The notes: a model not told the origin generated them from the sequence alone. A stretch of 64,000 bases of DNA from Haliotis rubra (GCF_003918875.1 NW_025767046.1:2604001-2668000), one strand, 5' to 3'; numbered from the stretch's first letter, positions 2,125 to 54,298 are shown. Numbers and translations: made by a program.

Positions 2125-3969
2125 ATGGCTTTCCTCGCAGTAGCTCTTCTATCTGTCATATCTCACCTGGCTTTGGGTCAAGGTTTTGGACAGAGCAATA
2201 CAGGTGTTGGTCAAGCTAATGCAGGATTTGGTTTGGGTCAGGCAGGAGGGTCTTGGGGTCAAGCTGGATTTGGAGTTGGTGGAATTGGCGCTGGTGGATT
2301 TGGTAACCATGGACGCGGGATTGGTGGAGCAGGTTGGGGTCAAGTAGGAGCAGGATTTGGCCAGAACATTGTCAACCCTTTCCTGAGTGAGTATTAATGC
2401 ACAATATAATTTACAACCAGGTCAATTCGCTTTATGATCATCGAACGCCCGACAGTATTGTATATTGATACGGGAATACTTCAGGTGTCTTCCCGATACC
2501 CATGTTCACTTGACATGCGGGATGTATTGACAATATGTTATGTTTTACAAAACGATGTTTGTGTTTGAGGGTCCAGAATAGTAAACGGTTAGATCCTAAA
2601 ACATAAGTGCACATTTACTAACCATTAAACGCCTATTTGTATTATATATGGGGTAACGTATTATTTTCTTTTTGCCCCAGATACAACCATCACATGCACT
2701 GGAACAGCTACAGGATTTGCCTTCTCTGCGACCCTAAGGAGGATGCAGCCATCTTGGGGAGGATGGGGTGTAAGTAGTCTCATTCACTGACTGAATTGGC
2801 CTGGGGTTTCGGGTGTTAGAAACTTCTTTAAAGTTAAACACTACATTTAATAGTACCTACGTCAGTTATGTACAAACAGATTGATTCATTTGTCAATACA
2901 GCTTGGTCGATCTAGAAGTGGACTGACTGGATCTGCCGTTCTAAGGACTACAACCGCATCAGGAACCTACAACCTCGTCATCACTGAGAGGTCTCGTGTT
3001 GAGGCTGGATGTACCGCTGATGGACTTGGACCTGTCATTGGAAGGTAGGGACGAGGTGTTCTTGATATGGGTCGTTTGGATGGGGTGGGATTAGTTAAAA
3101 CAATATTGGGAAAGTATTATGTATTTTGGGGTTTGAACCACACACGTTTAACGAGTGTTTAAAGAATTTTCACATTTTTACGCTTGAATAAAACTTTTAT
3201 CCCGACCGGTAAAGAGAAGTTCTCTAATGCATCTTGATATCACACAATGTCTCTTCAACAGCAACGTTTGGGGCCAACGTCAAGGTCTTGGTCAAGGCTG
3301 GGGTCATGGTCTTGGTCAACAGTGGGGTCAAGGTCTTGGTCAAGGATGGGGTCATGGTCTTGGTCAACAGTGGGGTCAAGGTCTTGGTCAACAGTGGGGT
3401 CAGCCATGGGGACAGCAATGGGGACAAGGTTCATTGGGCACCGGAACGACCACCACCCCCGGAGTTGTCAGCTCTGTCACCCTCACTACCAACCAGGAGA
3501 CCATCGTTGACTTGGGTACTGCCAACCTACCATTCAGAGAGCTCGAGAGATACGGAGGACGTGGTCTGGCTGTAAGTATTTTTTAAAAACTTGTTTGAAG
3601 TCATTTTATAGTGTCCAGACAATTTAAAGGAAGTCCTATTGTCCGCTTATGTACGTTTTTAATCAAATCCACCATCGGCGTAACAGGGAAATTTGGATTC
3701 ATCACACATAGTTAACAATGTGTGAATCACTCAAATTGAAAACAGAACAAAACAAATGTCTGGTTAGACCTGTAAGTATTAAGTGTTATAATAAACTCTG
3801 TAAGATAGATGTAGCTCTGTAACTAATGGCATTGTCTTACTGTTGTTTTCAGTTGTGCACATCCTTGACCACTGGCACTGATGGACGTCAAGTGTGTATG
3901 GAGCCTATTCTGGCCTGCTGCAAGTTGGGATTCGACAACATGGACGCTGTCACACCAACACCTCCATAA
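2125..3969 (+). CDS. Paralog A: secreted Gly/Gln/Trp-rich protein with C-terminal 6-Cys (putative degenerate Cu/Zn-SOD-fold) domain, 306 aa
   Basis: Exons 2125-2386, 2681-2769, 2902-3044, 3262-3571, 3853-3969. All introns GT-AG; spliced frame open to TAA. Signal-peptide-like MAFLAVALLSVISHLALG|Q; C-terminus LCTSLTTGTDGRQVCMEPILACCKLGFDNMDAVTPTPP. Confidence 0.93.
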
Positions 3970-5589
3970 ATGAGTGATGGGGAAGATGGAAGAAGTGTGT
4001 GAATGTTGAATGCAAAATGTGTGAAAACGTTTGTTATGTTACCAATAATCAATATATTTAGATAATTATACAATTTCTCATATTTTCATTTCATGTGACA
4101 TTGCTACATTTGTTGTCTGCATGTCCCTGCATGTTTATCATCAGTCATTATCAAAAGTACAAAAGATATTTATTTCATAAATAAAAAAATACGAAAACAA
4201 CACGTGTTTCATACTTCTTATGTCAAAACAGCATCAGTAATTATGTGCAAACACGTGTCATTAGACACGTGGATCACTTCTCTGAGAGACGAAAGGTGAC
4301 TGCAGTGCCAAGGATTGTATGCCAGATCGTGGCTTTGAGTGAGTGAGTCAGTGAGTTTAATTTTACGCCGCACTCCTCATTATTCCATCTAAAATGACGG
4401 CGGTCTGTAAATAATCGAGTCTGGACCAGACAATCTAGTGATCAACACCATGAACATCGATCTGCGCTATTGGGATACGATGACATGTGTCAACCAAATC
4501 AGTGAGCCTGACCACCCGATCCCGTTAGTCGCCATTTACGACAAGCATGGGTTACTGAAGATCAATTCTAACCCGGATCTTCACGGGTCTCATGGCGTCC
4601 GCTTTGACAGACGAAAGGGTGACCCAAGTGCAAATGATTCATGTTGGATCACAGCTTGGATGGGAACATGTGGGACCCTGAGGTCGAAGACGCCAGAACT
4701 GATTGTGTACGCAGGTTTTCCATTTACACGGATTTGACAAACCTTGATGTAACTGAAATGTATTTTAAATAAGTGTAAAACGTTTCTCATTGAGTCACTG
4801 CTCTTACAGTATTATCATCGTAGAGGAATTCCTACCTTGAAGCGGATGCCTGCTTGATTGGTCAGAATAATATTAATATTAGAAAATGCACCAGCCTTTT
4901 CATACCTGGACTTCCGTATGATTAAACATATCCATCGATAGCCTATCAGTGTATACAACAATGGTTGTCTCTTTTACACTGCAGAAGCACCAGTCCAAAC
5001 ATTATGAAGTGAAGGTGAGGTGAAATGGGGTTTAACGTCGTATTTAAGAATATATCGCTCATATGACAACGTGCATGCGTGTGTATGTGTGGCTGCTTGT
5101 ACTAGCCCAGACTTAAGCTGGTTTTATAGTGCTAGCTCACTGAGATACCATGCCGCAGTTAAGCATGGCTACCCTACTCAGACACATTATACCGACTCCG
5201 ATCCGACCAGTCCCAGGCCGGGAACAACAAGTGCCATATTTTAACGTCTTTTGATATGACGCGGCCGAAGATCGAACCCGCGACATTTTGCTCTCCATAT
5301 AAAGAAGTCTGTTTCAAAACATATTAAATATAGCTGCTAGTGACCCATCAAACAAAAGTCTATATCAGTGTTAGCACAAGATTAATTCCAGTGCGATTGC
5401 TCCGTCACGGAAAGAAAGAATACTTAATTCATAAGATCATATTTTCAACACCCGGGGATCATTCAACTCGCGTAGCCACTAGACGCACCAGGTTAGTGTG
5501 GCTTTCCCATCCTTACGAGGTACCCATTCACAGCTGGGTGGACAGGGACACATAGTCACAGTACTTTGTCCAAGTTTACTGCACGTTGC

Positions 5590-11560: not shown

Positions 11561-13766
11561 ATGGCTTTCCTCGCAGTAGCTCTCCTATCTGTCATAGCTC
11601 ACCTGGCTTTGGGTCAAGGTTTTGGACAGAGCAATACAGGTGTTGGTCAAGCTAATGCAGGATTTGGTTTGGGTCAGGCAGGGGGGTCTTGGGGTCAAGC
11701 TGGATTTGGAGTTGGTGGAATTGGACTTGGTGGACGTGGGCTTGGTACCCATGGACAGGGAATTGGTGGAGCAGGATGGGGTCAAGTAGGAGCAGGATTT
11801 GGCCAGAATATTGTCAATCCGATCCTGAGTAAGTATTTATGACTTATATAATTTTCGTTTCAAACTGAAAATGTTCTTTCTAAATTTTAGGCAACAGCTC
11901 AAAATAGTTAACGCTAGACGCTAGACCTTTAAGAAGCTATGTTGATCGCTGGACTGTCTGGTCCTGACTCGATTATGTACCGCCATATAAATTGAAAATT
12001 GCTGAGTGCGGCTTGTAAGAAAAAACAAACAAACCAACCAATCCTTTAGAAGCTTGGACATTGCCTAACGAAATTATTCCTTGTATGTTTATATTGTACG
12101 ACTTAAAGAGTTTAACTCGAGGAACTCCCCGATACACATTGCAACTGGACATTCCCTGAACATTTGCTTACTTAACTACCATTTGTAAGTTCAGTGTTTA
12201 ACTGTAACTGTTTTCCCCCAGATACGACCATTACATGCACTGGAACAGCTACAGGTTTTGCTTTCTCTGCGACCCTAAGGAGGATGCAGCCGTCTTGGGG
12301 AGGATGGGGTGTAAGTACATGTAGTCTTATCTATTGACTGAACTGGTCTGGGGTTCTGAGGGTCAGATACTTCATGAAGTGTTTCTTCACTGACGGACAA
12401 AAGAAAGTATAAAATCGTGTTTGATGTGGGTCTCATGGTTGTTGAACCTGAAGTGTGTAATTGGCATAAGCCTGGTAACTTTAGATGAGGAATATTATAT
12501 GTATTTTAGCAAATCCACATTCGTTTTTGACAGTCACTACATACTCCTCCCCTGACTTGAGTGTTTTGAAACGAACTGAGATTGTTTTTATTACAGTTTG
12601 GTCGATCACGTAGTGGACTGACTGGATCTGCCGTTCTTAGAACTACAACAGCGTCAGGAACCTACAACCTCGTCATTACTGAGAGATCACGTGTGGAGGC
12701 TGGATGTACCGCTGATGGACTTGGACCTGTCATTGGAAGGTAGGGACGGGTCATTTGTCATTTAGATTCCTCTGAAGGGATGAGGGAAGTGTAAACCATT
12801 CTGGGAAAGAAGTATGTGTCTCCCCAAGCAAATGTTTAATATATCTTTGTATCAGTAAAGCATTTTCTCATTAGCAATTGTAAAAGGAAACGATTATAAA
12901 ACATCACCTAGTCTCCTCCACACCAGCATGTAATGGTCTCACCATTAACACTTAGCATTTAAAAAAGTATCACATTTTAAAAATGAATAAAATGTTTGCC
13001 GGAAAATTGTTGTCAAATGCATCTTGATATCACACAATGTCTCTTCAACAGCAACGTTTGGGGCCAACGTCAAGGTCTTGGTCAAGGCTGGGGTCATGGT
13101 CTTGGTCAACAGTGGGGTCAAGGTCTTGGTCAACAGTGGGGTCAAGGTCTTGGTCAACAGTGGGGCCAGCCATGGGGACAGCAGTGGGGACAAGGTTCAT
13201 GGGGCACCGGAACGACCACCACCCCCGGAGTTGTCACCTCTGTCACCCTCACGACCAACCAGGAAACCATTGTTGATTTGGGTACTGCCAACCTGCCATT
13301 CAGAGAGCTTGAGAGATACGGAGGACGTGGGCTGGCTGTACGTATTTTGTTTAAATCACATGTAAAGTTACTTCATAGTCCCCAGAGACTTAAATAATGT
13401 GTCTATTATGTACAATTTTAACCAAACCCACCGACGGGGAAATTGAAAGCTGTGAGTTGTTTCAATAATATTTTATGTCATTTCATAGTCCTCACAAAAT
13501 TGGAATTACACCCGCCGGGGACGTGTCGGGGAAATAAAAATGATTACGAAATACAATTTGTTGAGTGCTTCACAGATTTATCAGTGCAGGAAGGTAAGAG
13601 TTAAACTATCCACCCCAAACAAATAACACTACCTTACTATTGTTTTCAGTTGTGCACATCCTTGACCACTGGTACAGATGGACGTCAAGTGTGTATGGAG
13701 CCTATCCTGGCCTGCTGCAAGTTGGGATTCGACAACATGGACGCTGTCACACCAACACCTCCATAA
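11561..13766 (+). CDS. Paralog B, 300 aa (closest to A)
   Basis: Exons 11561-11828, 12222-12310, 12597-12739, 13052-13337, 13650-13766. Same phases and exon 2/3/5 lengths (89/143/117) as A. Confidence 0.93.
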
Positions 13767-14150: not shown

Positions 14151-15907
14151 CATTAATATGAGCATTCCTTCAGAGCGTCCATCTACATTAATATGAGCAT
14201 TCCTTCAGAGTGTCCATCTACATTAATATGAGCATTCCTTCAGAGCGTCCATCTACATTAATATGAGCATTCCTTCAGAGCGTCCATCTACATTAATATG
14301 AGCATTCCTTCAGAGCGTCCATCTACATTAATATGAGCATTCCTTAAGAGCGTCCATCTACATTAATATGAGCATTCCTTCGGCGTCTTTCTACATTAAT
14401 ATGAGCATTCCTTCAGAGCGTCCATCTACATTAATATGAGCATTCCTTCAATGCTTCCATCTACATTTATATGAGCATTCCTTCGGCTTCTTTCTACATT
14501 AATATGAACATTCCTTCAGGGATTTCATGTACATTAATATGAACATACATACAGGGCTTCCATCTACATTAATATGAACATTCCTTCGGGGCTTCTTTCT
14601 ACATTAATATTAACATTCCTATAAGGCTTCCATCTACATTAATATGAGCATTCCTTCAGGGATTTCATGTACGTTAATATGAACATTCCTTCAGGGCTTC
14701 CATCTACATAAATATAAACATTCCTTCCGGGCTTTCATCTATATTGATATAGGCATTCCTAGACGGCTTCCATCTACATTGATATGAACATTCCTTCAGT
14801 GTTTTCATGTACATTATTATGAACATTCCTTCAGGGCTTCCATCTACATAAATATAAACATTCCTTCCGGGCTTTCATCTACATTGATATAAGCATTTTT
14901 AGACGGCTTCCATCTACATTGATATGAACATTCCTTCAGTGTTTTCATGTACATTATTATGAACATTTCTTCAGGGCTTCCATCTACATAAATATAAACA
15001 TTCCTTCCGGGCTTTCATCTACATTGATATGAACATTCCTAGACGGCTTCCATCTACATTGATATGACCATTCCCATAGGGCTTCCATGTACATTGATAT
15101 GACCATTCCTTCAGGGCTTCAATCCACATTGACTTGACCATTCCTTCAGCTCTTCCACCTACATTAATATGACCCGCGGTCCTTCAAGGCTTTCATCCAC
15201 ATTAATATGACCGGTCCTTCAGGGCTTTCATCCATATTAATATGACCGGTCCTTCAGAGCTTTCATCCACATTAATATGACCGGTCCTTCTTGGCTTTCA
15301 TCCACATTAATATGACCACTCCTTCAGGGCTTTCATCCACATTAATATGACCGGTCCTTCAGGGCTTGCATCCACATTAATATGACCGGTCCTTCTTGGC
15401 TTTCATCCATATTAATAAGACCACTCCTTCAGGGCTTTCATCCACATTAATAAGACCACTCCTTCAGGGCTTTCATCCACATTAATATGATCGGTCCTTC
15501 AAGGCTTGCATCCACATTATTATGTACGGTCCTTCTTGGCTTTCATCCACATTAATATGACCGGTCCTTCAGGGCTTTCATCCACATTAATAAGACCACT
15601 CCTTCAGGGCTTTCATCCACATTAATATGACCGGTCCTTCAAGGCTTGCATCCACATTATTATGTACGGTCCTTCTTGGCTTTCATCCACATTATTATGA
15701 CCGGTCCTTCAGGGCTTTCATCCACATTAATATGACCGGTCCTTCAGGGCTTGCATCCACATTAATATGACCACTCCTTCAGGGCTTTCATCCACATTAA
15801 TATGACCACTCCTTCAGGGCTTTCATCCACATTAATAAGACCACTCCTTCAGGGCTTTCATCCACATTAATATGACCGGTCCTTCAGGGCTTGCATCCAC
15901 ATTAATG
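14151..15907. repeat. 35-bp minisatellite, ~50 units
   Basis: Unit CATTAATATGAGCATTCCTTCAGAGCGTCCATCTA, drifting to CATTAATATGACCGGTCCTTCAGGGCTTTCATCCA. Confidence 0.95.
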
Positions 15908-21751: not shown

Positions 21752-24700
21752 TTAAGGGGCTGCCGGGGTGACAGCATCCATGTTGTCGAATCCCAACTTG
21801 CAGCAGGCCAGGATAGGCTCCATACACACTTGACGTCCATCAGTGCCAGTGGTCAAGGATGTGCACAGCTGAAAACAACAGTCAGGTAGTGTTATTTGTT
21901 CGTCTTAGAGAGATTAAGGCCATTTGGTTAAAAGAACATTTCCACTCTAAGGACACTTAAGAAAGATTTTCTTTTCGACATTTGATACTCTCATCCTTGA
22001 CCTGAATTGATTGCTAATAATCTCAAATATGAATATCTTAATAATAAGGAGAAGTCTTATAAAAAGCAACAAAGCATGCACAAAGCGCTAACACCCTAAT
22101 TTTTATTACCCCGGATAACCCAAGCTGCCTGTTTGGCGCTAGAAGGTTATAGTCACATGACTTTATCCAACCGGGTTCCCATTTTCTGCTGGGTGAACAT
22201 AGGCAAGTTTGAACAAACTCACTTGCCTAAGGTGAGACCACATGTATCGCACGTGCTTCGTTGTTGGGCAGGACGTAAGTCCTAGAAACTCTCAGGAGTC
22301 AAGTTTTCAAACACGGTCACCCATCCAATGACTGTCCGAGCTCGCCGCTGCTTAACTTCAACTGATTCGTGACCTGCGCTCTGTGCACAGGACCACACGC
22401 CACCACATCTTCAAATATATTGTAAATCTCCGGGGACTATGAAAGAACAATACATGCAATTTAAATCAACTACTTACAGCCAATCCGCGTCCTCCGTATC
22501 TCTCGAGCTCCCTGAATGGTAGGTTGGCAGAGCTCAAGTCGAGGACAGTCTCCTGGTTAGTACTGAGGGTGACAGAGGTGACAACTCCAGGGGTGGTGGT
22601 CGTTCCGGTGCCCCATGAACCTTGTCCCCACTGCTGTCCCCATGGCTGGCCCCACTGTTGACCAAGACCATGACCCCATCCTTGACCAAGACTTTGACCC
22701 CATCGTTGGCCCCAAACGTTGCTGTTGGAGAGACATAGTGTGATTTCAAGATGTAGTTGACAACAAATTTCCAGTAAACGTTTTATTCAAGTTTTAAAGA
22801 TGTGACCCCATCGTTGGCCCTACACATTGCTGAAAGTGTAAGGAAACATTCATTTCATATTCATCATATTATATCATTTTATGAAAAAATTGATGATTCA
22901 TCACTTGGATTCGTTATGATAACCTTAGAAATCATAAATATTTTCAGAAGTAAGTGATAATATAATAGTTTGTTGCTAATGCCACTTTCTAGAGACAGGC
23001 AGGATATGGTCAGATTTTTAACTTTTAAAGGTAGGTCCGAGATACAATACGCCAACATATCGCACGCATTTGACTATATGAATTTTGTAATCCTCCGCCT
23101 CCTTCGGAATCAAAATGATCCTTACCTTCCAATGACAGGTCCGAGTCCATCAGAGGTACATCCAGCCTCTACACGAGATCTCTCAGTGATGACGAGGTTG
23201 TAAGTTCCTGACACAGTGGATGTTCTCAGAACAGCAGATCCAGTCAGACCTCCGCGGGATCGACCCAACTGGAAAGGAAAAAACAAAACAAATATAGGGC
23301 ACTAGAGTTTGTGAAGATTCCACACTTCTGAAATGATGGAAGCGGATTTCAACAGTATGGCAACAGAGAATATATAATATCATTGCCAGACATTAACCAT
23401 CCTCGATTGTCTACCAAAACCGATTCCAATTGGCGTAAACGACAAAATTATATGAGTGAGTGAGTTGATTTTTACGACGCTTTTACGCAATATTCCAGCA
23501 ATATCACGGTGGGGAACACCTGAAATCGGCTGCACACATTGTAAGGCTTGCCCTCATTTCGCCTACAGTAATTTTAATGGCCATTTCTACCACCCCTATG
23601 ACAATAATGGGTATTACCCAACTGGCTGTTAACATTAAACAAATAGATCTTGTCTTCGGCGTGACGAGCGAACACCCCTGAAGTAATATGAACGGATAAC
23701 TGAAAAGCATGATGACACAAGACGTTTGTACAAAGGGAAAACATGTCCTGCACTAACTGTAACACGAACCACATTTTGCAAAATTTGTAGTTAAAGATAG
23801 GTATTGGTTTATTGTCTTACGCCGCACAGGAATACACCTGCAAAACGACCGCGGTCTCTAAACGAGTCGGGCGATGGGGTAGCCTTATGGTTAAAGCGTT
23901 CGCTGGTCACGTCGAAGGCCTGGGTTCGATTCCCCACATGGATACAATGTGTTTCTGGTGTCCCCCCGCCGTGATATTGCTGGAATATTGCAAAAAGCGG
24001 CGTAAAACCAACTCACTCGTCCTCTCTGAACGAGTCGCATGCATGGTACGCAGTTGACCTGTCATGTTGACCTGTTATATTTAAATAGAAGGAATTCAAC
24101 GTATACCACGGAGAACTTTGCTGACAATCACAGAAAGGTTATCAGGTCGAAACCGGGCTTCGAAACAAAGATCACGTGTTTCTGCCAGGCCTTAAGATCG
24201 CAACGTCGTAACGTCGCAACCGTAGAGACTGAGCAACAAATGTCTCTTAGTGAGTGAGTGAGCTTAGCGTTACGCCGCTTTAGCAATATTCCAGCAATAT
24301 CACGACGGGGACACCAGAAATGGGTTTCACACATTGTACCCATGTGGGAAGTCGAACCCGGGTCTTTGACGTGACGAGCGAACGCTTTAACCACTAGGCT
24401 ACCCCAGCGCCCCTTTTCCTTAGTGAATATGAAACAACCTCGTAGAACATCATTAAACAACTTACTCCCCATCCTCCCCAGCTGGGCTGCACCCTCTTCA
24501 GTGTGAAAGATCCCGTGATGCCTGTAGCTCCGAACGTGCAGGTGATGGTAGTATCTAAGAAGAAAAGCATAAATGTATAATTATAATTATTAGCCCATTC
24601 TTTAAAAAACCCTGCAGCTATTGATCTATTGCATTATTTATAATCATGTTTGATGTAAGTATTTAATCGATATTTCACGAAATACTGTTATGATCCATGT

Positions 24701-25569
24701 GTTTTCCTTGTTGCTTGAATGAATGTATTGTACATATACAGTTCTACTGAGATCACTACGAATATGACACCGATCCGGATCTGAAGTTGGACTGTAAATT
24801 GTTATACGGATTAGAATTGGTCTATGCTTGTTACGAGAGGCGAGTAACGGGTCAGGTTGTCAGGCTCGCTGACTAGGTAGGAACGCGTTAACGTATCCCA
24901 TATCGATGCTCATTTAGTCAATCACTGGATTGTCTGGATTGTTGCCTAGACTCGATTATTTATAAACCGCCGCGATATAACTGGGACATTGGTGAGTGCG
25001 GCGATAAACAACAGAAAATACCCACACACATAATAGTATCATACCTTAAAAGGGGGTACGGAATACATGGTGATGGCATTTTAGGTCGACGTAAATATTA
25101 CTGCCTTCGCTTACAGTGTTTTGTTGAAATAGTAGTATAACGAAACGAAAGCTTATCACTATAAATACTTACTGAGGAGAGGGTTAATCCTGATCTGTCC
25201 CCATCCTGTTCCTGCTTGACCCCAGCCAGCACCTGCTTGACCCCAGCCAGCTCCTACTTGACCCCAGCCTGCTCCTACTTGACCCCAACCGGCTCCTGCT
25301 TGGCCCCATCCAGCACCTGCTTGACCCAATCCAGCACCTGCTTGACCCCATCCAGCACCTGCTTGACCCAATCCAGCATTAGCGATTCCTTGTCCACCAT
25401 TGCCAAATCCAAGTCCGTTGATTCCAGATCCTATTCCAGCGGTGCCAATACCAAACCCAGCGTTACCTTGACCTTGACCTTGACCGGCGTTACTAAAACT
25501 CTGATCCCATCCTTGACCAAAGGTCAGGTGAGCTATGACCGATACAAGTGCTGCTGCGAGTAATACCAT
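21752..25569 (-). CDS. Paralog C, 329 aa, (GQAGAGW)n N-terminal repeats; mosaic gene
   Basis: Exons (minus) 25569-25173, 24554-24466, 23268-23126, 22721-22478, 21868-21752. Frame is open if the acceptor at 22722-22723 is used; a dead second exon-4 start lies at 22829. Confidence 0.88.
22105..22406 (-). mobile_element. 5S rRNA-derived SINE (SINE3-like) in intron 4 of paralog C
   Basis: Minus strand GAAGTTAAGCAGCGGCGAGCTCGGACAGTCATTGGATGGGTGACCG resembles the 5S internal control region (GAAGCTAAGCAGGGTCGGGCCTGGTTAGTACTTGGATGGGAGACCG), followed by a GTTCACCCAGCAGAAAATGGGAACC body. Confidence 0.65.
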
Positions 25570-27644
25570 GATAGAACGATGGTGGACGGGAGACGTACTG
25601 CTGTACTGCTGGACACGGTGGGAGTTTTATACGCAAGGAGTATAGTAAGATTGGCCATTAATTATGCCATGAATAAAGGTGTCCCCGTCGGATGTGAGGT
25701 CCCACCTTCGTTGCGCAATGAAGGACTGGTCAGTTAAGGTGGCTCATCAAAATGTAATTACAGGTCATTAGGTTAATCATAAAGCACCTTTAAAGTACTG
25801 CTAATTCAATTAAAGAATGCCTGTGAAACACGAGAGACCGTTGTATTACTATCAAGCGTATAAAAAGGAGTATTTTTTATAATTATCATAAGCATACTCA
25901 AAAGGTAGATTGAATTACTGGCGTCGGAACTGACACTCGGAAACAAAACCAAGCATAAAGCATATATCAATAGTGTTTTGTGCTGTAATATCAAAACATG
26001 TCTTTGAATTCACAACGAAACTATTCAATGTTCTCATCTTTCTTGAAGGCGATAAATAAAATTTGACAGGAAGCTATGTTTATGCGTTGGATTAACCAAA
26101 GTGTTACAAATGTTATCCAAGCGCTACCTGGCTGGAAACAAACGCCGAAACCTTATACAGTTTAGGTTCAAAATACCACTCTGATACCAATATAAAATAA
26201 CAATCAAATGATCTTTTCCTGGAAAGTTGAATTTTTATCCACCTTTAAACATTAGTGTACGTTAACATTTGCTCGGCAATTTAGTTTATTCCGGACAAGG
26301 GGCGATGGGGTAGCCTAGTGGTTAAAGCTTTCGTTCGTCACGCCGAAGACCCGAGTTCAATTCCCCACAAGGGTACAATGTGTGAAGCCCATTTCTGGTG
26401 TCGCCGACATGATATTGTTGGAATATTGCTAAGGGCGGCGTACGGTCGTATGAGACTCTAGAAAATTTAATAGTCACACTGCTGTCCCATCTTACCGGGT
26501 ACCTTTTCTATCCTGGGCCATCTGAGGCACAAGTCGATCAAAGTACCTCGGTTATGGAGGCACCACATGTGAAGCGCCTGGATTAGATTTACCGACTAGA
26601 GAGATAAGGCTTACATATGGCCAGACCGCCTCCGTGGTGTAGTGGTTAGAGCGTCCGCCCGGAGAGCGGAAGGTCGCGGGTTCGATCCCCGACCGCGTCA
26701 TACCAAAAGACGTTAAAATATGGTACTTGTTGGTCCCTGCCTGACGCTCGGCATTAATGTGTACAATAAGGACTGGTCGGCTCGGAGTTAGTATAATGTG
26801 TCTGAGTGGGGCATTCATGCTTCACTGCGGCATGGTATCTCAGTGGGCTAGCACTATAAAACCAGCCTCACATATGGCCAAAATATGGGATTAATAAATC
26901 AAATCATACCATATTTCTGATTGTATGAAGATCGTTCTTTACAAATTCACAGGCCGCGTCATGCCAAAAGACGTTGAGTGAGTGAGTGACTTGGGTTTTA
27001 CGCTGCCCTTAACAAATATTCCAACCAAATCACGTCGGGGGACACCAGAAATGGACTTTACACATTGTACTCAATTGGGGAATCGAACCCGGGTCTTAGG
27101 CGTGACGAGTGATCGCTTTAACCACGAGGCTACCAACCCCCCCCCCACACACACACACACACACACCACACACACTAGACACACACACGTATTTTAATTG
27201 TGTGTCACCAAGGACGATGGCATATCGTTTAATGCTTAAAATACTTAATACTTCAAAAGTAAGCTCTGAGATTTTGTATCTGACACAGTGTACTTCTGTT
27301 TGATATGGTTCCATCTGTATCCACCATTGTCACATTTGCAGCTCTCTTGCTCACAGCTGTTTCTCAAACGGTCCAACCTGTGTCTAACACAGCCCCAGAT
27401 GAATCTGATTTAGCTGTGTCTTGGCCCAGTCTGAATCTGACGTGGCCCAATCTGTGTCTGACAAAGTCCAGTCCGTGTCCGACCTTGATGAAGCTGTGTT
27501 TGAATTGGTCCCAGCTGTACCTGACATGACATCATGAGTAACTGACATTGTCCCAACTGTATCTGAAATGTACCCTTCTCCGTCTGAAACTAATGCCACG
27601 GTCCTAAAAGAATCTGGTATTGTCCCATCTGCATCCAACATGGT

Positions 27645-30600
27645 TCAGTATGTTTGTGTCATTGATGTAGCTGTGTCTGAATTGGTCCCAGAATCAGACT
27701 CGGTCCCAGCAGGATCAGAATCGGTCCCAGCTGTATCTGAAATTGATTCGGTCCATTCAGCATCTGACATTGTTCTATTTGTATCTGACTTGGTATCAGC
27801 TGTGTCTGACATGATCTCAGCTGTATCTGAAATTGATTCCGCTGTATAGGGCCCTGTGTCTGAATTTGACACGGTCGCACCTACATCTGACATCTTAGAT
27901 CTATTTGAAAATATTTCAGTTGAGTCTGATGCGGTCCAGTCTCCAACTAGCGTTATCGCACTTGTATCTGACTTATCACCATCATCTGCATCTGACATCC
28001 TGGATCTATCTGGTACTGTCATAGATGTATCCGACATTGATTCAATTATATGTGAATTTGATTCAGCTGTATGTGATGAGTTCTCGTCTCTACCTGACTT
28101 TAAATCTGATGCATCTGATGCAGTCCAGTCTGTATCTGACTTGGTCCCAATTGCATCTGACACCCTAGCTCTCTCTGATATTGTCCTAGATGTATCTGAC
28201 TTTGATACAGATGTATCAGAGCATGATTCGACTGTATCCGCTGTATTAGCTGATTCCGACGGGATCCAATCTGAATCTGATTTGGTCGCACCTATTCCTG
28301 ACGTCCTAGCTGTATCCGACGCGGTCCAATCTGAATCTGATTTGGTCTCAACTATCCCCGACGTCCTAGCTGTACCCGACATTTTGTCAGTTGTATCCGA
28401 CGGGATCCAATCTGAATCTGACTTGGTCGCACCTATTGCTGACGTCCTAGCTGTATCCGACATTGTGTCAGCTGTATCCGACGGGATCCAATCTGAATCT
28501 GACTTGGTCGCACCTATTCCTGTCGTCCTAGCTGTATCCGACATTGTGTCATTTAATTCTGAGGTGGTCCTTAATGTATTTGAATTTCTACCATCTGACA
28601 TTGTCACGTCTGTATCTGATATTGTCTCAGATGCATCTGAATTTGATTCAGCTCCATATGATGCGGTCCAGTCTGTATCTGACTTAGTCCCAATTGCATC
28701 TGACACCCTAGCTCTATCTGATATTATCCTAGGTGTATCTGACATGTTCTCAGCTGTATCTGACATCGGGTCGGCTGTCTCCGAGAGGATCCAATCTGAA
28801 TCTGACTTGGTTGCACCTATTCCTGACGTCCTAGCTGTATCCGACATTGTGTCAGTTGAATCTGACGTCGTCCTTAATGTATCTGCCTTACTGTCATCCC
28901 TATCTGACATTGTCTCAGCTGTATCTGACATTGAGCCAGATGTATCCGACGCGATCCAGTCTGAATCTGACTTGGTTGCGCCTATTCCTGACGTTCTAGC
29001 TGAATCCGAAATTGTGTCATTTAATTCTGACATGGACCTTAATGTATTTGAATTTCTACCATCTGACATTGTCACATCTGTATCTGACATTGCCTCAGCT
29101 GTAGCTGAAATTAATTCAGCCGTACCTGACGCAGACCAATCTGTATCTGACTTGGACCGACCTGCATCGGACCTGGTCCCATCTGCATCCGTCGTCCTGA
29201 TTCTATTTGATATTGTCCTATATCGATCAGAATTTGATTCAGCTGTATATGATGCCGTCCAGTCTGTATATGACTTGGTCCCAATTGTATCTGGCACCCT
29301 AACTTTATCTGACATTGAGTCAGCTGTATCCGACGCGGTCCAATCTGAATCTGACTTGGTCGCACCTATTCCTGACGTCCTAGCTGTATCCGACATTGTG
29401 TCAGTTGAATCTGACGTCGTCCTTAATGTATCTGACTTTCTATCATCAGTATCTGACATTGTCACATCTGTATCCGACGTGGTCCCATCTGCATCTGACT
29501 TGCTCTCACCAGCATCTAACACCCTAGCTCTCTCTGATATTGTCCTAGATGTATCTGACTTTGATACAGATGTATCAGACCTTGATTCGACTGTATCCGC
29601 TGTATTAGCTGAATCCGACTCGGTGCAATCTGAATCTGACTTGGTCGCACCTATTCCTGACGACCTAGCTGTATCCGACATTGTGTCAGATGTATCCGAC
29701 GGGAACCAATCTGAATCTGACTTGGTCGCACCTATTCCTGACGTCCTAGCTGTATCCGACATTGTGTCATTTAATTCTGAGGTGGTCCTTAATGTATTTG
29801 AATTTCTACCATCTGACATTGTCACGTCTGTATCTGATATTGTCTCAGATGCATCTGAATTTGATTCAGCTCCATATGACGCGGTCCAGTCTGTATCTGA
29901 CTTAGTCCCAATTGCATCTGACACCCAAGCTCTATCTGATATTATTCTAGGTGTATCTGACATGTTCTCAGCTGTATCTGACATCGGGTCGGCTGTCTCC
30001 GAGAGGATCCAATCTGAATCTGACTTGGTTGCACCTATTCCTGACGTTCTAGCTGTATCCGACATTGTGTCATTTGATTCTGACGTGGTCCTTAATGTAT
30101 CTGCCTTTCTATCATCGGTATCTGATATTGTCACATCTGTATCTGACGTGGTTCCGCCAGCATCCGATGTCTTGATTCTATCTGATCTCGTCCTAAATGT
30201 ATCTGAATTGAATGCAGCTCCATATGACGCGGTCCAGTCTGTATCTGACTTGGTCCCAGATACATCAGACATCCTAGCTCTATCTGATATTGTCCTAGAT
30301 GCATCGGACATCCTAGCTCTATCTGATATTGTCCTACATGCATCAGACATCCTAGCTCTATCTGATATTGTCCTAAATGCATCAGACCCTGATTCAGTCA
30401 CATCTGAAATGATTGTACGTGACGATGTCCCAGATGAGTTTAACATTGATTCAACTGTTTCTGATATGACACTTTCTGTATCCGAAATTGTATCTGACAT
30501 TGAGTCAGCTGTATCCGACGGGATCCAATCGGAATCTGACTTGGTAGCAACTATTCCTGACGTTCTAGCTGTATCCGACATTGTGTCAGTTGAGTCTGAC

Positions 30601-30665
30601 GTGCTCCGTAATGTATCTGACTTTCCCCCATCCGTATCTGACATTGTCACATCTGTATCTGACAT
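27645..30665 (-). CDS. Ser/Asp/Thr-rich highly repetitive acidic ORF (1006 aa); possible large exon or decaying gene
   Basis: Long open frame of SDT/MSDTARTSGIGATKSDSDW repeats. The same repeat continues past an in-frame TGA (27645-27647) into ORF 27384-27641 and upstream across apparent frameshifts near 30725 and 30785. No signal peptide found. Confidence 0.45.
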   Translation of the reverse strand: MSDTDVTMSDTDGGKSDTLRSTSDSTDTMSDTARTSGIVATKSDSDWIPSDTADSMSDTISDTESVISETVESMLNSSGTSSRTIISDVTESGSDAFRTISDRARMSDACRTISDRARMSDASRTISDRARMSDVSGTKSDTDWTASYGAAFNSDTFRTRSDRIKTSDAGGTTSDTDVTISDTDDRKADTLRTTSESNDTMSDTARTSGIGATKSDSDWILSETADPMSDTAENMSDTPRIISDRAWVSDAIGTKSDTDWTASYGAESNSDASETISDTDVTMSDGRNSNTLRTTSELNDTMSDTARTSGIGATKSDSDWFPSDTSDTMSDTARSSGIGATKSDSDCTESDSANTADTVESRSDTSVSKSDTSRTISERARVLDAGESKSDADGTTSDTDVTMSDTDDRKSDTLRTTSDSTDTMSDTARTSGIGATKSDSDWTASDTADSMSDKVRVPDTIGTKSYTDWTASYTAESNSDRYRTISNRIRTTDADGTRSDAGRSKSDTDWSASGTAELISATAEAMSDTDVTMSDGRNSNTLRSMSELNDTISDSARTSGIGATKSDSDWIASDTSGSMSDTAETMSDRDDSKADTLRTTSDSTDTMSDTARTSGIGATKSDSDWILSETADPMSDTAENMSDTPRIISDRARVSDAIGTKSDTDWTASYGAESNSDASETISDTDVTMSDGRNSNTLRTTSELNDTMSDTARTTGIGATKSDSDWIPSDTADTMSDTARTSAIGATKSDSDWIPSDTTDKMSGTARTSGIVETKSDSDWTASDTARTSGIGATKSDSDWIPSESANTADTVESCSDTSVSKSDTSRTISERARVSDAIGTKSDTDWTASDASDLKSGRDENSSHTAESNSHIIESMSDTSMTVPDRSRMSDADDGDKSDTSAITLVGDWTASDSTEIFSNRSKMSDVGATVSNSDTGPYTAESISDTAEIMSDTADTKSDTNRTMSDAEWTESISDTAGTDSDPAGTESDSGTNSDTATSMTQTY

Positions 30666-33286
30666 GGTCCCAGCTGTATCAGAAATTATTTCATCTGTGT
30701 CTGAAACGACCTTAGTTGTGACGATGTCCCAGCTGTGTTAAACATTGATTCAACAGTTTCGGATTTGACACTTTTGGTATCTGACTGTATCTGACACAGC
30801 CCGAGCAGTATCGCACTTCTTCCCAACTGTCCCATATACTTGTTCTACATAAGAAACAGGCACATTTGGTAAGGTCCATCTAAATATCTATGCTGTACAG
30901 TCTCTGAGTTGCGTCCCGTTATGTGAATTCACCGGTGCGTGTAATAAAACAATAGTGATACTAAACGTCTTCATGCGCCAGTCCGCATTGTACACAAGAA
31001 CACAGCCATGTATTCAATGACACCTAAATGTAAACAACGACAAGCAGTTAGTACCTGTGAAGAGCTTGCACATAAGTTTTCATCAACTCATCACGACACG
31101 AGTGAATATAGTTTATGCCGTTTTAACACCATTCCAGGAAAATCACGGGGGTCACCAGAAATAGGTTTCATACAATGTACCCTTGTGGGGAATCGAACCC
31201 GGGTCTTCGGCGTTACGAGCGGACGCTTTAACCACTAAGGGTACTACCCGACTTGCTTCCGATGCATACAAGGAAATCAAACACTTACACTGTACAACAT
31301 TCGAGCGTATTCTTCATTACATGAAGACCCACAGAGTCTTTTGTGTGACGACAAAATGAATATTTCCTCTCATCAAGTTAACAATGTCTCTTTGTGTCTT
31401 TTCAATGTCTCATGATCATTTGGACCAGGAGGCACAGGCATATGTATTCGGACAAATTCATGTCAGTCGAAGGCGTTGACGCATGTTTCAGTTGCACAAT
31501 TTAACATGAAAGCGTGCTGGGATATTATGTAATACAGGACGGGTCTCACACCCGCTAAGCTTTTTACGGGAAACAGTTACTGCACGTGTAAAATGATCAC
31601 GTCGCATGCAATGACAATACATGTTCAGGGTTCGTAGTGGTATATACCTCGGCCCTGAACCAGGAATATTTCACCCCAAACGGTTTAGGCTTAAAACCAA
31701 GTCTTTTTTCGGAATGACAATGACATAACTTTTCAAAAGTCATATTTCCTTTAACCCAGGTGAAGTTGTTATGAACTCTTCAACTCGGATACACCAAAAA
31801 GAAAACATTTAAGGTCGGTACTGGACACCAGCAATTCTATGACAAGTAAGCAATTTAAAAAATATAAATCGCTGTTATGGCGTTGAGCAAGTTTAAGGGG
31901 ATTGTGATTAACTATGAACAGTAAAGGTGATTTAGGTAAATTAAATATATATTGATACATCAGGTAGTGTGGAGATTCGGTCTTTTGCAATTCATGCTTG
32001 TTGTAAGAGGCGACTAACGGGATCGGATGATCACGCTCGCTGACTTGGTTGATGAATGTCATCATGTCCTCACTGTGTTGTGACCACCTCAGTGGTGTTA
32101 GTGGTTAGAGCGTCCGCCCGAAGGTCGCGGGTTCGATCCTCGATACCGAGTTTTCTATTGGGCAATAGAAAGTTATTTTTTTATAGAAAATGTTGTCAAA
32201 TACCACCATGCCTATTTAGCTATAATTCAATCCCACAACAGTGTGTTAGATTCAGTGGATATTTAATTTAGTGGTGCGAAAGTGCAACCACTTGACTTTT
32301 ATAATGTTTGGAGTGTCGGAAAATTTGTGCCGAAAAAATAACAAGCTAATTAATTTCTAAGTTACGATTGCTAAGATATCCATCAACAGTTGTGTGTCAT
32401 AAGCGAAAAAATGAAATAAAATAAACCCATATAGAATTATTCTTTGAGGGCAGACTAAGCGTTACCATAATTAACGCTTTTAGATTGGTTTTCGCTAACT
32501 AATGAAACATTTCAGCCGTAAGAAAATCAAACTAATGCCAAAATCAAGTGAAATGTACACTTCCGTTTGTTCTTCAGTTTACGTACCAGGTTGTAACTGA
32601 TAACGAAAAGAATTTAACCCTTGCATCAGTTTCATCTCATGCATTTGAATCCAGTAGAAAGGGTGTTTTCAATCTGTTTTCAAACACGTGTTATAAAATG
32701 AAACTTGAAGCCCGACCGTCATGAAACGATAGTAGTATACTACCATATAAAAACACGTCAGTGAATTAACAGTGTCATTTAAGAAATGTTCATTATACGA
32801 ATGGATCACTGAAAATAAGTGTGGACACCAGGTGTTCGAGGAAGAGGTGAGAGTGTAAGTGTCCCATCATTCACGTTCTTGTACAGAGTACACATTTTAG
32901 ACAAGCGACAACAAAGAATATTCTTAATTCGTTTTTTTATTTCTAAAATAAATTACTACGAACATGAAATATATACATCACATGAAACAGATAGCGATGC
33001 TCATATCAACGCTATTATACCCAACCATGTTGAATGATACCCAAAACACATTTACATACAGAACATTTTCATTGTTGATTCCATATCACCCTAACATCGA
33101 CATGATTTACTTTGCAATAGAAATATCGTATACGGCATCTCGACTGTACAGTGCAATCAATCACTAATCGTTTGTTCCATCTACTGATTCGTTGGTCGTC
33201 ATCATTTCTTGTGTGCTTACATTTATGTTTTCAAAACAAGTTTTCTTTGTAAAACTGAGAACGATGAGAAGAAACAGCTTCCTTAT

Positions 33287-35849
33287 TTAAGGTGCTGCCG
33301 GGGTGACAGCGTCAATGTTGTCGAATCCCAACTTGCAGCAGGCCAGGATTGGATCCATACACACTTGACGTCCATCAGTTCCAGTGGTCAAAGATGAACA
33401 TAGCTGAAAACAGTAGAAGATAATGTCATGTCTTTGTTTTTGAGTGCTTAGATCGTTTTAACAAGGATACGAGTGGCTCAGGACAAAATACAATGATTTA
33501 AATCCAATAATTTGTAAGCTTACACGTTAACAAAACTATATAGCCTTAACGTATAATACACTTTTATTAAAGGATGAAATATGTGAATAAAGACCTTCAT
33601 AAAGAGGTGAAACCTATCGGAACAGATATGTATTCTAAAATGATAACGCCTGTCAAAATGTGTCGAGCACTTACAGCCATTCCGCGTCCTCCGTATCTCT
33701 CGATCTCTCTGAATGGCAGGTTGGCGGAGCTCAAGTCAAGGACAGTCTCCTGGTTGGTGCTGAGGGTGACAGAGGTGACAACTCCGGGAGTGGTGGTCGT
33801 TCCAGTGCCCCAAGACTGACCCCACTGTTGACCAAGACCTTGTCCCCACTGATGTCCCCATGGCTGACCCCACTGTTGACCAAGACCTTGACCAAACCTT
33901 TGGCCCCACACGTTGCTGAAAGTTCGAAGGAACTATTATTTTCGTTCAGATCTAAAATATTTGACGTGAATTGTTGGCATGGAAAAAGTGGGTGAATTAG
34001 TGCATTACGCTAATGTTTTACCGTTAGAAACATTTTCTAAGTGGTTTACTAATTGGTTACATAACAACTTATGGTATGGATTGACAACGTCTTTATTTAC
34101 GACACGACGTTTCTGAGCTACTACTTGCCCCTTCATCAAGTGAAACATCATCACCTGATGAATGCCCGTGAAGATCCGGGTTAGAATTGGTCTTCAGTAA
34201 GAGGTGACTAACGGGATCGGGTGGTCAGGCTCGCTGACCTGGTTGATACATGTCATCGTATCCCTATTGCCTAGATCGATGCTCATGCTGTTGATCACTG
34301 GATTGTCTAGTCCAGACGCGATTATTTACAGACCACCGCCATATAACTGGAAAATTGCTGTGTGCGGCGTTAAAAATAACAATCACTTAGTCACCTGATG
34401 AAGTGGAAAGAAGTAGCCCAGAATCGTCGTGTTGAAAATAATAAAGAAATTGTAAATTCATATCATACGTTGTTTTGTTACCATCCAACAATCTGACTAA
34501 TTGGTTGTTCTTAAAGGAAGCTTCCCGAGACTCGCGAATGATAGTCAGATCTTTCAAGGACAGGTCCGAGACACAATGAGCCATCACATCGCACACTTTG
34601 ACTATATGATTTCAGTAATCCTTCGCCTATTTCGGGATCAAAATGATCCTTACCTTCCAATGACAGGTCCGAGTCCATCAGAGGTACATCCAGCCTCCAC
34701 ACGAGATCTCTCAGTGATGACGAGGTTGTAAGTTCCTGACACAGTGGATGTTCTCAGAACAGCAGATCCAGTCAAACCTCCACGGGATTGACCCCACTAT
34801 AATATGTAAGAAAGAAGATACGGGAATGTGTTCTTGTTGGTCATTCTGTGATGTTGCCCAAGTGCATAGTTTTCACGAAAAATGAATGTTTACACGATCT
34901 GACATATTCTGATAGTTCTACATAACCTGCGTACACATTAGTCGAAAGTGAAGCATGTTAGAAACGTTTCCCACTCTGACATCCCCACAACCGATTATGG
35001 TGCTAGCAAACAAGGAAATGATTCACGACTTAATCACTGAATACGATACAGATGCTGATGAATGAACAGAAACAACTTACGCCCCATCCTCCCCAGCTTG
35101 GTTGTCTCCTCCTCAGGGTCAAGGATCCTGTGATCCCTGTAGCTGTGAAAGTACAGGTGATGGTTGTGTCTGAAACCAAGACAAATGTCAAATGAAAACA
35201 GTGTTATACCATATACTCAAAGTAAAAAAACATCATATTGAAGCTTAGCCCTTGTCTACGTTGTCAGTTCATAATTTGAAACATATGTTTCAAGTTTCAT
35301 GTTACTTTCAAGTTTGAAAGTGGATATACGTTGTATAAATCATTTAAGATTATCTTACATTAAATATATGACATAAGAAACTTAAATGTTCTCACTCAAG
35401 ATAGGATTGATGATGTTCTGTCCAAGTCCTCCTATTTGTCCCCATCCTGCTCCAAGTCGACCAAAGCCAAGTCTGGGTAGACCAAGCCCGAATCCTGCCT
35501 GACCTAAACCTGCTCCGGCTCCAGCTTGACCAAATCCTGCTCCAGCTTGACCAAATCCTGCACCAGCTTGACCAAATCCTGCTCCAGCAGCTTGACCTAA
35601 ACCTGCTCCTGCACCAGCTTGACCAAATCCTGCCCCAGCTTGACCCACACCTGCTCCTGCTTGACCAAATCCGGCTCCTGCTTGACCAAAGGCTCCACCT
35701 GCTTGACCAAAACCTCCCCCTGCTTGACCAAAGGCGGCTCCAGCTTGACCCCAAGATGATCCAGTATTACCAAAGCCCATTTGACCCATACCTTGACCAA
35801 AGGCCAGGTGAGCAATGACAGATAGAAGAGCTACAGTGAGGAAAGCCAT
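33287..35849 (-). CDS. Paralog D, 347 aa, (GQAGAGF)n N-terminal repeats
   Basis: Exons (minus) 35849-35396, 35169-35081, 34796-34654, 33915-33675, 33403-33287. ATG 35849 chosen by homology (MAFLTVALLSVIAHLAFG) and a TATA box just upstream. Confidence 0.92.
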
Positions 35850-36359: not shown

Positions 36360-36507
36360 NNNNNNNNNNNNNNNNNNNNNNNNNNNNNNNNNNNNNNNNN
36401 NNNNNNNNNNNNNNNNNNNNNNNNNNNNNNNNNNNNNNNNNNNNNNNNNNNNNNNNNNNNNNNNNNNNNNNNNNNNNNNNNNNNNNNNNNNNNNNNNNNN
36501 NNNNNNN
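36360..36507. other. Assembly gap (N run)
   Basis: Run of n; a ~50-bp direct repeat lies on each side (~36255 and ~36628). Confidence 1.
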
Positions 36508-40672: not shown

Positions 40673-42886
40673 TCAGGGGGCTGCCGGGGTGACAGCGTCC
40701 GTGTTGTCAAATCCCAACTTGCAGCAGGCCAGGATAGGTTCCATACACACTTGACGTCCATCTGTACCAGTGGTCAAGGATGAACATAGCTGGAAACAGT
40801 TTGAAGATAATGACATGTCATTGTTTTGGCAAGGATACACGTGGCTCAGGAAACAAACAATTATTCATTTTCAAATATCAAATTTGCAAGGCTATATATT
40901 TGCAAATACACTGTACACTGTTATAACGCAAAATGTGTTTTAAGGTTTAAATGGTATATTATGAGAATTGATTGAAGCTCAAATTTGTCAATAAAGACAT
41001 TCCTAAAGATGTAAAACCTGTCGGAGCAGATGGATATTCTGAAATGGTGCTGCATGTGACAAAATTATCGAGCACTTACAGCCATTCCGCGTCCTCCGTA
41101 TCTCTCGAGCTCCCTGAATGGCAGGTTGGCAGAAGCCAAGTCAACAACAGTCTCCTGGTTGGTGCTGAGGGTGACAGAGGTGACAACTCCGGGAGTGGTG
41201 GTCGTTCCAGTGCCCCATGAACCTTGTCCCCACTGCTGTCCCCATGGCTGACCCCACTGTTGACCAAGACCATGACCCCATCCTTGACCAAGACCTTGAC
41301 CCCATCGTTGGCCCCACACGTTGCTGAAAGTGTGAAGAAAAACTATTTTAGTCAAATCTGATTATCTTATCTCAGATGTTATTTTATGAATCGGTGAAAC
41401 AAAAACTTGCCTGAATCAGCTCGGTTTGATAAAGTAGGAATCTTTAACATAATGTTTCCCAGATAAATATCTTTTGAATATACTATGTCATGGATGGAAG
41501 GGGATTATTGTAGAAGCAGGATTTACAACACGAGATATGGTCAGATCATTGCATTTCAAGATAGGTCCGAGACGCAATCACATTGGATTATATACTAGTA
41601 TATTCAGTACACCCCTCCTCCTTTGGAAACAAAAAGATCCTTACCTTCCAATGACAGGTCCGAGTCCATCAGAGGTACATCCAGCCTCCACACGAGATCT
41701 CTCAGTGATGACGAGGTTGTAAGTTCCTGACACAGTGGATGTTCTCAGAACAGCAGATCCAGTCAAACCTCCACGGGATTGACCCCACTATAATATGTAA
41801 GAAAGAAGATACGTGAATGTTTTTTATAGTTAGTTATTCTGAGACATGCTTTTGAAGTAATAAGGACATAAGACATCTTCCAGGTTTACATAATCTACCT
41901 TCATTTCACGGCAGTACTAACCTAATGAAAGAACGAGGAAAGTTCCGTTTTGTTTTAGCATTGTTCAGTTGTTCCAAATCATTTACCATGTGGTGAAATC
42001 CACGCACATTGGGTTTTTTTGAAAAAGGGGTCATACAAACTAGCTGATATATACAAACGATTTTCAGTTTGACATAAACAGGTAACAAAAGCGCCCCTCT
42101 CTGTGGTGATATGTTAGTCTATCACACTGAATAAGTGACACATTCTGATAAGTGAACTGAAAAAAAAACTTACACCCCATCCTCCCCAGCTTGGTTGTCT
42201 CCTCCTCAGGGTCAAGGATCCTGTGATCCCTGTAGCTGTGAAAGTACAGGTGATGGTTGTGTCTGAAAACAAGGCAAAGCTAATTAAATCGTGCTGTACC
42301 ATTAACTTAATGTTCCAAAACATCATATTAACACAGCTTTGATCATTGCTCTACCGGCGTCTTACATTGCTTTACATCAGTTTAAATTTGTGTTCCAATT
42401 ACCATCTATAAGTTTGAAATTTGTTTGAGATTATCTTACATTAAAATGAATGTAATAAGAAACTATAAGAAGCTATGACTCACTCAAGATAGGGTTGACG
42501 ATGTTCTGTCCAAGTCCTCCCATTTGTCCCCACCCTGCTCCAAGTCGACCAAAGCCAAGTCTGGGTAGACCAAGCCCGAATCCTCCCTGACCTAAACCTG
42601 CTCCGGCTCCAGCTTGACCAAACCCAAACCCTGCCTGACCTAACCCTGCTCCTGCTTGACCAAATCCTGCCCCAGCTTGCCCCACACCTGCTCCTTCTTG
42701 ACCAAATCCGGCTCCTGCTTGACCAAAGGCTCCACCTGCTTGACCAAAACCTCCCCCTGCTTGACCGAAGGTGGCTCCAGCTTGACCCCAAGATGATCCA
42801 GTATTACCAAAGCCCATTTGACCCATACCTTGACCAAAGGCCAGGTGAGCAATGACAGATAGAAGAGCTACAGTGAGGAAAGCCAT
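40673..42886 (-). CDS. Paralog E, 331 aa (closest to D)
   Basis: Exons (minus) 42886-42484, 42262-42174, 41787-41645, 41323-41080, 40789-40673. GT-AG introns, open frame to TGA. Confidence 0.92.
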
Positions 42887-54159: not shown

Positions 54160-54298
54160 NNNNNNNNNNNNNNNNNNNNNNNNNNNNNNNNNNNNNNNNN
54201 NNNNNNNNNNNNNNNNNNNNNNNNNNNNNNNNNNNNNNNNNNNNNNNNNNNNNNNNNNNNNNNNNNNNNNNNNNNNNNNNNNNNNNNNNNNNNNNNNN
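54160..54298. other. Assembly gap (N run)
   Basis: Run of n. Confidence 1.

Follow-up and report, generated by a model that had tools for sequence, protein, structure and literature searches.

A degenerate, metal-free superoxide dismutase domain predicted in a family of secreted, glycine-rich abalone proteins

The DNA considered here is a single 64-kb stretch, called the window below, from the abalone Haliotis rubra (64,000 nucleotides; GCF_003918875.1 NW_025767046.1:2604001-2668000). It holds seven copies (A-G) of a gene whose protein has a conserved core of ~150 residues. Taken as a whole, what was found is best explained, at a probability that we put at about 0.78, if this core is a degenerate Cu/Zn superoxide dismutase (SOD) domain of the extracellular (EC-SOD) type without metal sites, and if the protein that carries it serves as a node in an extracellular material. 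The interpretation as an SOD fold is supported at the level of predicted structure, not at that of ordinary sequence statistics.

The reading runs as follows. The barrel would have lost all of its Cu ligands, all of its Zn ligands and the catalytic Arg, so that canonical superoxide dismutation would not be expected of it. It would have kept the Cys pair of the SOD disulfide together with the second Cys that is characteristic of EC-SOD, which lies in a CC doublet on strand beta8 and would have its counterpart in a Cys on beta1; loop VII, now shortened, would hold a third Cys pair. Loop IV, the Zn loop, would have turned into an expandable, disordered repeat built from Trp, Gly and Gln (the W-G-Q repeat), and N-terminal to the barrel would stand a signal peptide and a Gly-rich low-complexity arm. 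Here, the barrel may be a very stable, disulfide-locked, possibly dimerising node that displays two flexible aromatic/Gly/Gln arms for multivalent cohesive contacts, and its setting could be a secreted extracellular material, such as a matrix, periostracum or mucus. We infer that the family protein is non-enzymatic and extracellular.

Gene A, with which the other copies were found, has five exons within 2125-3969 on the + strand, and every one of its splice sites is canonical (GT/AG). The original prediction, which was made from the DNA with no database search, had read a metal-free extracellular SOD-like domain in 2681-3969. Exons 2-5 of gene A make up this span, and its domain has the claimed sequence. 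Exon 1 (2125-2386) ends one base into a split codon, AAT, which adds an Asn in front of the domain (NTTITC). A TATA-like ggtatataaa stands ~60 nt upstream. The spliced product, 306 amino acids (aa) long, is letter for letter the NCBI Haliotis rubra protein P0021. The parts of the gene are these:

2125-2386, + strand: exon 1, with the start codon, signal peptide and Gly/Gln/Ala/Phe low-complexity N-terminal region
2681-2769, + strand: exon 2, with an NTT sequon, Cys1 (TTITC) and predicted strands beta1-beta2
2902-3044, + strand: exon 3, with predicted strands beta3-beta4, the EAGC motif (Cys2) and Val/Thr at the His46/His48 equivalents
3262-3440, + strand: exon 4, first part, with the octapeptide-like W-G-Q(H) repeat, placed within loop IV (the Zn loop)
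3441-3571, + strand: exon 4, second part, with predicted strands beta5-beta7 (PGVV ... GRGLA) and Thr/Val at the His80/Asp83 equivalents
3853-3969, + strand: exon 5, with Cys3 (at the His120 position), Cys4, the shortened loop VII, the CC doublet (Cys5, Cys6) on predicted strand beta8, the C-terminal tail and the stop codon

The case for the fold is made by two AlphaFold2 models. Model 1 is the repeat-free core of P0005 (residues 55-220), a protein of the type encoded by copy G; it was built from a 10-sequence alignment, with a predicted local distance difference test (pLDDT) score of 71.8 and a predicted template modelling (pTM) score of 0.69. When model 1 was compared with the PDB by Foldseek, Cu/Zn SODs took every one of the top 50 places, the first going to human EC-SOD (2jlp) with a TM score of ~0.56. 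VIA-align laid residues 4-157 of the model on residues 1-153 of SOD (135 residues aligned, Z 12.0), and gave 256 chains at Z 8 or more. Among Swiss-Prot AlphaFold models matching model 1, the top 30 were all SOD or CCS.

Model 2 is the core of protein A itself (P0021, residues 84-306), built from 17 sequences. Its strands have pLDDT values of 85-92, and residues 84-144 of the model, the W-G-Q repeat, fall below 50; the repeat in loop IV is predicted to be disordered. A scan of 48,161 PDB representatives with model 2, which was independent of Foldseek, placed chains of the SOD superfamily at all of ranks 1-14 (Z 11.1-7.9). Among these were human SOD1 (11.1), Megavirus SOD (10.6), domain II of CCS (10.6), the Cu-only SOD5 of Candida (10.1), EC-SOD (10.1), bacterial SodCs and a B. 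subtilis SOD-like protein (7.9). The next fold was that of unrelated sandwiches, at Z 6.6. The structural search that the original prediction had proposed thus gave what it had anticipated, with both models matching Cu/Zn SODs end to end (Z 11-12) and no unrelated family competing (6.6 versus 11.1).

A protein language model pointed to the same family. For P0005 and for protein A alike, 98 of the 100 nearest clusters were Sod_Cu (PF00080), with scores of 0.91 (188/256 shared features) and 0.85 (177/256), respectively. These predictions support a core that would be an eight-stranded Greek-key beta-barrel of the SOD type.

The register that the models imply was checked on an SOD (L089:7187-7642:-). 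In the numbering of human SOD1, it gives the following correspondence:

His46, Cu ligand: Val in the family
His48, Cu ligand: Thr in the family (Asn in the G type)
Glu49: Glu, kept
Gly56-Cys57, disulfide Cys: Gly-Cys2, kept
His63 and His71, Cu/Zn ligands: no conserved His after Cys2
His80, Zn ligand: Thr or Arg
Gly82: Gly, kept
Asp83, Zn ligand: Val
Gly114-Arg115: Gly-Arg, mostly kept
His120, Cu ligand: Cys3
Arg143, catalytic: Ile or Val, within PI(L/F/A)ACC
Cys146, disulfide Cys: Cys5
Gly147: Cys6

No conserved His was found anywhere in the family core. Where SOD has loop IV, the family has the repeat or, in the G type, a stretch without His. Between Gly82 and His120 there are no indels relative to the SODs. 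Loop VII, which holds the extra Cys pair, has 20 residues between the positions of Cys3 and Cys5 versus 26 in SOD, and is thus six residues shorter. Several proposals of the original prediction hold in this structure-implied register: the Cu ligands replaced by Val, Thr and Cys, the lost Zn His and Asp, the catalytic Arg turned into Ile or Val, the GC Cys and the CC doublet at their SOD3 positions, and an insert that falls in loop IV. It had also suggested that the two extra Cys could staple a shortened electrostatic loop (loop VII); that loop is indeed shorter and carries both.

All six Cys residues are invariant in A-F, as originally proposed, and are present in nearly all orthologs; five are seen in the visible exons of G, whose exon 2 lies beyond the window end. 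The equivalents of Cys57 and Cys146 occur in nearly all members, and the beta1 Cys and the beta8 CC doublet are invariant. By the ranges of the structural alignment, Cys1 on beta1 falls at the position of SOD1 Cys6 and of the N-terminal Cys of EC-SOD. The two disulfides of EC-SOD are made by its beta1 Cys, the GC Cys after beta4 and the beta8 CC doublet. By analogy, the family would have C2-C5 and C1-C6 disulfides, and C3-C4 by elimination.

How much of this can be recovered from sequence is a separate matter. The original prediction had aligned the motifs of the family with those of SOD3 in order and spacing. By standard statistics that alignment does not rise above chance, yet it is not arbitrary. 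The best single local match of the family to SOD in hhalign is the beta4-GC segment of exon 3, in the register first proposed, and a relaxed alignment sets GRxxxxC on GRxxVVH and ACC on ACG. The family was also compared with an SOD profile in ungapped blocks at fixed register, where z is measured against permuted columns and the rank is taken among other registers:

Gly82 to His120, 39 columns: z 3.3 (reached by 26 of 20,000 permutations), top 0.017% of 5,854 registers
beta4-GC, 20 columns: z 4.4, top 0.07% of registers
beta8, 9 columns: z 1.6, top 1.6% of registers

The blocks support the register seen in hhalign.

Several results weigh against the reading as an SOD-derived structural protein. 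A match to Sod_Cu had been expected at the outset, and none was found by Pfam hmmscan at E values up to 10, with single exons or with the full P0002-P0006, P0021, P0023 and P0027; the only matches were sub-threshold noise (FlgD_tudor, Keratin head, prion octapeptide), and viral SODs, run as a control, score E 1e-43 on the same profile. Neither an exon-3 profile nor one for the whole core found an SOD among 177,635 PDB sequences, again at E up to 10. In hhalign, comparison with an enterobacterial SodC profile (E. coli sodC with 79 genome loci), which is too narrow, gave P 0.21. Some 120 eukaryote-type viral SOD genes were recovered with a degenerate DNA pattern for GFH(V/I)HEFGD, and comparison of the family with 19-65 such SODs gave P 0.13-0.25. 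Pairwise Smith-Waterman scores against SODs equal those of shuffled sequences (z ~0, chance level). The block tests are supporting rather than independent evidence, as their registers were picked after the motifs had been seen. AlphaFold2 and the language model are, of course, learned predictors, working here from shallow, all-Haliotis alignments (10-17 sequences) and giving models of moderate confidence.

The proposed role was looked for in shell proteomes. In H. laevigata supplementary files (Mann 2018; 6.2 million characters), some of them incomplete, there is no instance of the family motifs ACCKLG, TERSR, GRQVC, NTTITC, ACCK, EAGCT and TTPGVV, and the same seven are absent from the text of the H. 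asinina shell proteome paper (Marie 2010); family motifs are absent as well from the supplements of a silk-like-protein paper. A search of shell proteomes had been suggested as a check, and its outcome is a weak negative that leaves a shell-matrix role unsupported, with periostracum, radula, mucus or plasma as other candidate settings. The structural role is a putative one.

These points could be taken to mean that there is no homology at all, and that AlphaFold2 and the language model have both drawn an unrelated or new Cys-rich beta-sandwich into the SOD fold, which is an abundant one. Every classical sequence test is negative, the alignments are 10-17 sequences deep and come from one genus, and structural identity to the SODs is merely 10-17%. 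Such an artefact would, however, have to produce a match over the full length that is clearly separated from other sandwiches (Z 11.1 versus 6.6), to bring the CC doublet, both Cys of the SOD disulfide and the motifs GC and GR to equivalent positions, to leave the 39-residue beta5-beta7 block free of indels, and to set three collinear blocks each in its best or nearly best register. We consider it improbable.

The search with gene A by tblastn gave six further copies in the window:

Paralog B, 11561-13766, + strand: 5 exons, 300 aa
Paralog C, 21752-25569, - strand: 5 exons, 329 aa
Paralog D, 33287-35849, - strand: 5 exons, 347 aa
Paralog E, 40673-42886, - strand: 5 exons, 331 aa; this is P0023
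Paralog F, 49173-52784, + strand: 5 exons, 285 aa; this is P0013, named 'shematrin-like protein 2' by NCBI
Paralog G, 61861-62965, - strand: exons 3-5 only, the remainder lying past the window end; the C-terminal part of P0002, with no W-G-Q repeat

The five-exon layout and the intron phases are common to every complete copy (A-F). The architecture of the protein is a signal peptide, a Gly-rich low-complexity arm of 60-250 aa, the core of ~150 aa and a short tail, with the variable W-G-Q repeat inside the core; the predicted barrel would be the only folded part. What varies is the length of that repeat, with exon 4 measuring 310, 286, 244, 241, 244 and 214 nt in A-F. A-E carry a long repeat, F and a subfamily that includes P0006 and P0014 a short one, and the G type (P0002, P0005) hardly any. 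In A, C, D and E the repeats contain GWGH units, with His, and there are none in F or G.

When the exon-3 profile was run exhaustively with HMMER against 1.84 billion representatives, only five clusters of the family were found. Word-indexed searches enlarged the family to 17 proteins, whose only sources are H. rubra, H. rufescens, H. asinina and H. cracherodii, and no Pfam domain was found on any of the 17. Automatic annotation calls them shematrin-like, fibroin heavy chain-like, spidroin-1-like, glycine-rich cell wall protein-like and even RNA helicase-like; these names reflect composition only.

Some members depart from the common pattern. P0006, P0014 and P0015 (from H. cracherodii, H. rubra and H. 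asinina, respectively) form a subfamily in which a very long Met/Gly/Ala repeat and SSQSGWG repeats precede the family core, the in-loop insert is short, and the annotated N-termini, which may be truncated, have no signal peptide. In H. asinina this Met/Gly-rich subfamily (L204) lies ~45-65 kb from a G-type gene on the same chromosome. Its identity with Has-GRBP was ruled out, as the published primers are absent from the subfamily locus. On another H. asinina chromosome, P0027 (L083:10001-11083) is matched by tblastn without a break (1-307 over 1080 nt); it is without the four introns of the family, has DGTK instead of EAGC and so misses Cys2, and is probably a retrocopy. P0026, on the same 3.5-Mb scaffold of H. 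rubra, is a 254-aa annotated protein that has no exon-2 segment (and so no Cys1) and is distinct from B; it is either the model of an exon-skipping isoform or an extra paralog outside the window.

A search of AlphaFold DB clusters with the model of protein A looked further afield. Its best matches were not SODs: A0A2C9M9I9, 'spidroin-1-like' (E 2e-8, with 24% identity across 289 columns), and V3ZJZ5 (E 2e-4), annotated 'jacalin-type lectin domain-containing'; oyster segon, with an SOD-like C-terminal part, came at rank 24, among the weaker SOD-like folds. To judge from the pattern of their accessions, the first two are probably from Biomphalaria and Lottia, respectively. They hint that the family reaches past Haliotis. 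It is conceivable, if doubtful, that the abalone proteins belong to an unrecognised, gastropod-wide class of biomaterial, in which a metal-stripped SOD barrel would be the cross-linking node of a silk-like protein and the former Zn loop would be a W-G-Q(H) arm, cohesive or ligand-binding, like the octarepeat of the prion protein.

The gene family is transcribed and spliced in related species. Contigs from RNA runs of two related organisms show 90-99% likeness to gene A, and their joints on it (2386/2681, 2769/2905, 3044/3262 and 3571/3854) are the predicted exon borders; at the joint 2769/2905, the first codon of exon 3 is replaced by three other letters. RNA runs labelled with the window's own species gave no family transcripts. 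Over the 3' exon and untranslated region of gene A (3850-4070), contig word depth reached ~1,400-2,500 in one related-organism run (X2), which suggests that the sample expressed an ortholog or paralog very strongly. Between paralogs, the ratio of nonsynonymous to synonymous substitution rates (dN/dS) in the core is 0.04-0.26, with dS from 0.11 to >1. Therefore, the barrel, non-catalytic though it would be, is under purifying selection.

Human EC-SOD (SOD3) is the nearest known structure. It is the best Foldseek match, it reaches Z 10.1 in the wide scan, it is secreted as the abalone proteins would be, and both have the beta1 Cys, the GC Cys after beta4 and the beta8 CC doublet. The abalone family differs in having its metal ligands and Arg143 replaced, a W-G-Q repeat for loop IV, and a loop VII six residues shorter with an extra Cys pair. 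It has a Gly-rich N-terminal arm and no heparin-binding tail, and Pfam does not recognise its domain.

SOD folds that do not catalyse are, of course, known. Domain II of CCS (yeast Lys7, 1ej8; human CCS, 1do5) and B. subtilis YojM (1s4i) are among the top structural matches to the abalone core (Z 11.7, 9.4 and 7.9, respectively), and their existence means that the barrel survives loss of its metal site. These proteins are intracellular or bacterial, deliver copper or have unknown roles, and carry neither low-complexity arms nor the extra Cys pattern. The silkworm protein EA4 is another non-catalytic SOD fold.

Closer in phylogeny are the oyster protein dominin/cavortin (Cg-EcSOD) and mussel pernin, which are extracellular SOD homologs without SOD activity that have other roles, including a proposed one in shell formation (PMC9118643, PMC6530089); pernin with Sod_Cu was reported in the shell proteome of Perna viridis (PMC6641155). 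Like the abalone family would be, they are SOD-derived extracellular non-enzymes of molluscs. As the literature describes them, they are plasma proteins with a Sod_Cu domain that Pfam recognises, whereas the abalone domain is not recognisable and comes with silk-like low-complexity arms and an in-loop repeat.

These bivalve proteins supply the main functional rival to the proposed material role, namely that the fold is SOD-derived and the protein is a soluble constituent of haemolymph or of the immune system, perhaps a carrier or a binder of pathogens, rather than a building block. Inactive SOD homologs are major plasma proteins in bivalves, with proposed immune and biomineralisation roles (PMC9118643, PMC6530089), and no family peptides occur in the abalone shell proteome files searched. 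Yet the family has none of the His/Asp-rich or metal-binding features of dominin/cavortin and pernin, and its long Gly-rich and W-G-Q low-complexity arms are typical of silk-like structural proteins, a composition that its NCBI names (shematrin-like, fibroin-like, spidroin-like) merely mirror. We regard a soluble role as unlikely, though worth keeping in view. The protein might also still bind copper or be redox active through new sites, either in the W-G-Q(H) repeats, which recall the prion octarepeat, or in the extra Cys pair. Exon 4 of F gives a weak Pfam match to the copper-binding octapeptide region of the prion protein (E 0.14), and four copies (A, C, D and E) have GWGH units; that match, however, is far below threshold, the His of the repeat is not conserved (none in F or the G type), and the core has no conserved His at all. 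We consider new copper or redox sites very improbable.

The name 'shematrin-like' raises the comparison with shematrins and other silk-like shell proteins, a general class of structural protein in mollusc shells (PMC4944945). The likeness is a signal peptide and Gly-rich repetitive regions, and is compositional only; unlike the abalone family, these proteins have no SOD-fold domain. The abalone silk-like members already described, Has-CL10Contig2 and Has-GRBP, are different genes, and none of the loci checked contains the GRBP primers. No published description of the present family was found in the literature. What sets it apart is the loss of all ligands, divergence beyond detection by Pfam and the turning of the Zn loop into an expandable repeat, and, further, the extra Cys pair in a shortened loop VII and the fusion of the barrel to a silk-like arm.

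The remainder of the window offers no canonical SOD gene that could have been a donor, and no Sod_Cu genes are recorded beside the H. asinina family members. GFHLH strings in the window were rejected as a trace of SOD; they come from a 35-bp satellite that mimics the SOD motif by chance. This satellite lies between paralogs B and C (14151-15592; 41 copies, 84% matches). A minisatellite at 27146-30704 has a base period of 21 bp and higher-order units of 39, 81, 165 and 468 bp, and has a long open frame on either strand, the minus-strand one Ser/Asp/Thr-rich with 1006 aa and the plus-strand one with 961 aa; periodicity alone can be enough to keep both frames open in a 21-bp repeat. Runs of N occur at 36360-36507 (148 bases), just upstream of paralog D, and at 54160-54298 (139 bases).

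The co-option of enzymes as structural proteins is well known for lens crystallins and, to our knowledge, rarely documented for extracellular materials. Here, a very stable enzyme scaffold has seemingly been stripped of its catalytic residues, is held under purifying selection, and is fused to silk-like arms, and its tandem duplicates differ mainly in how long a repeat has grown within what was the zinc loop. Recognising the fold would correct annotation names that were based on composition, and yields a structural hypothesis that can be tested. It would also extend the theme of SOD-derived non-enzymes in molluscs from the plasma proteins of bivalves to a gastropod family with a different architecture.

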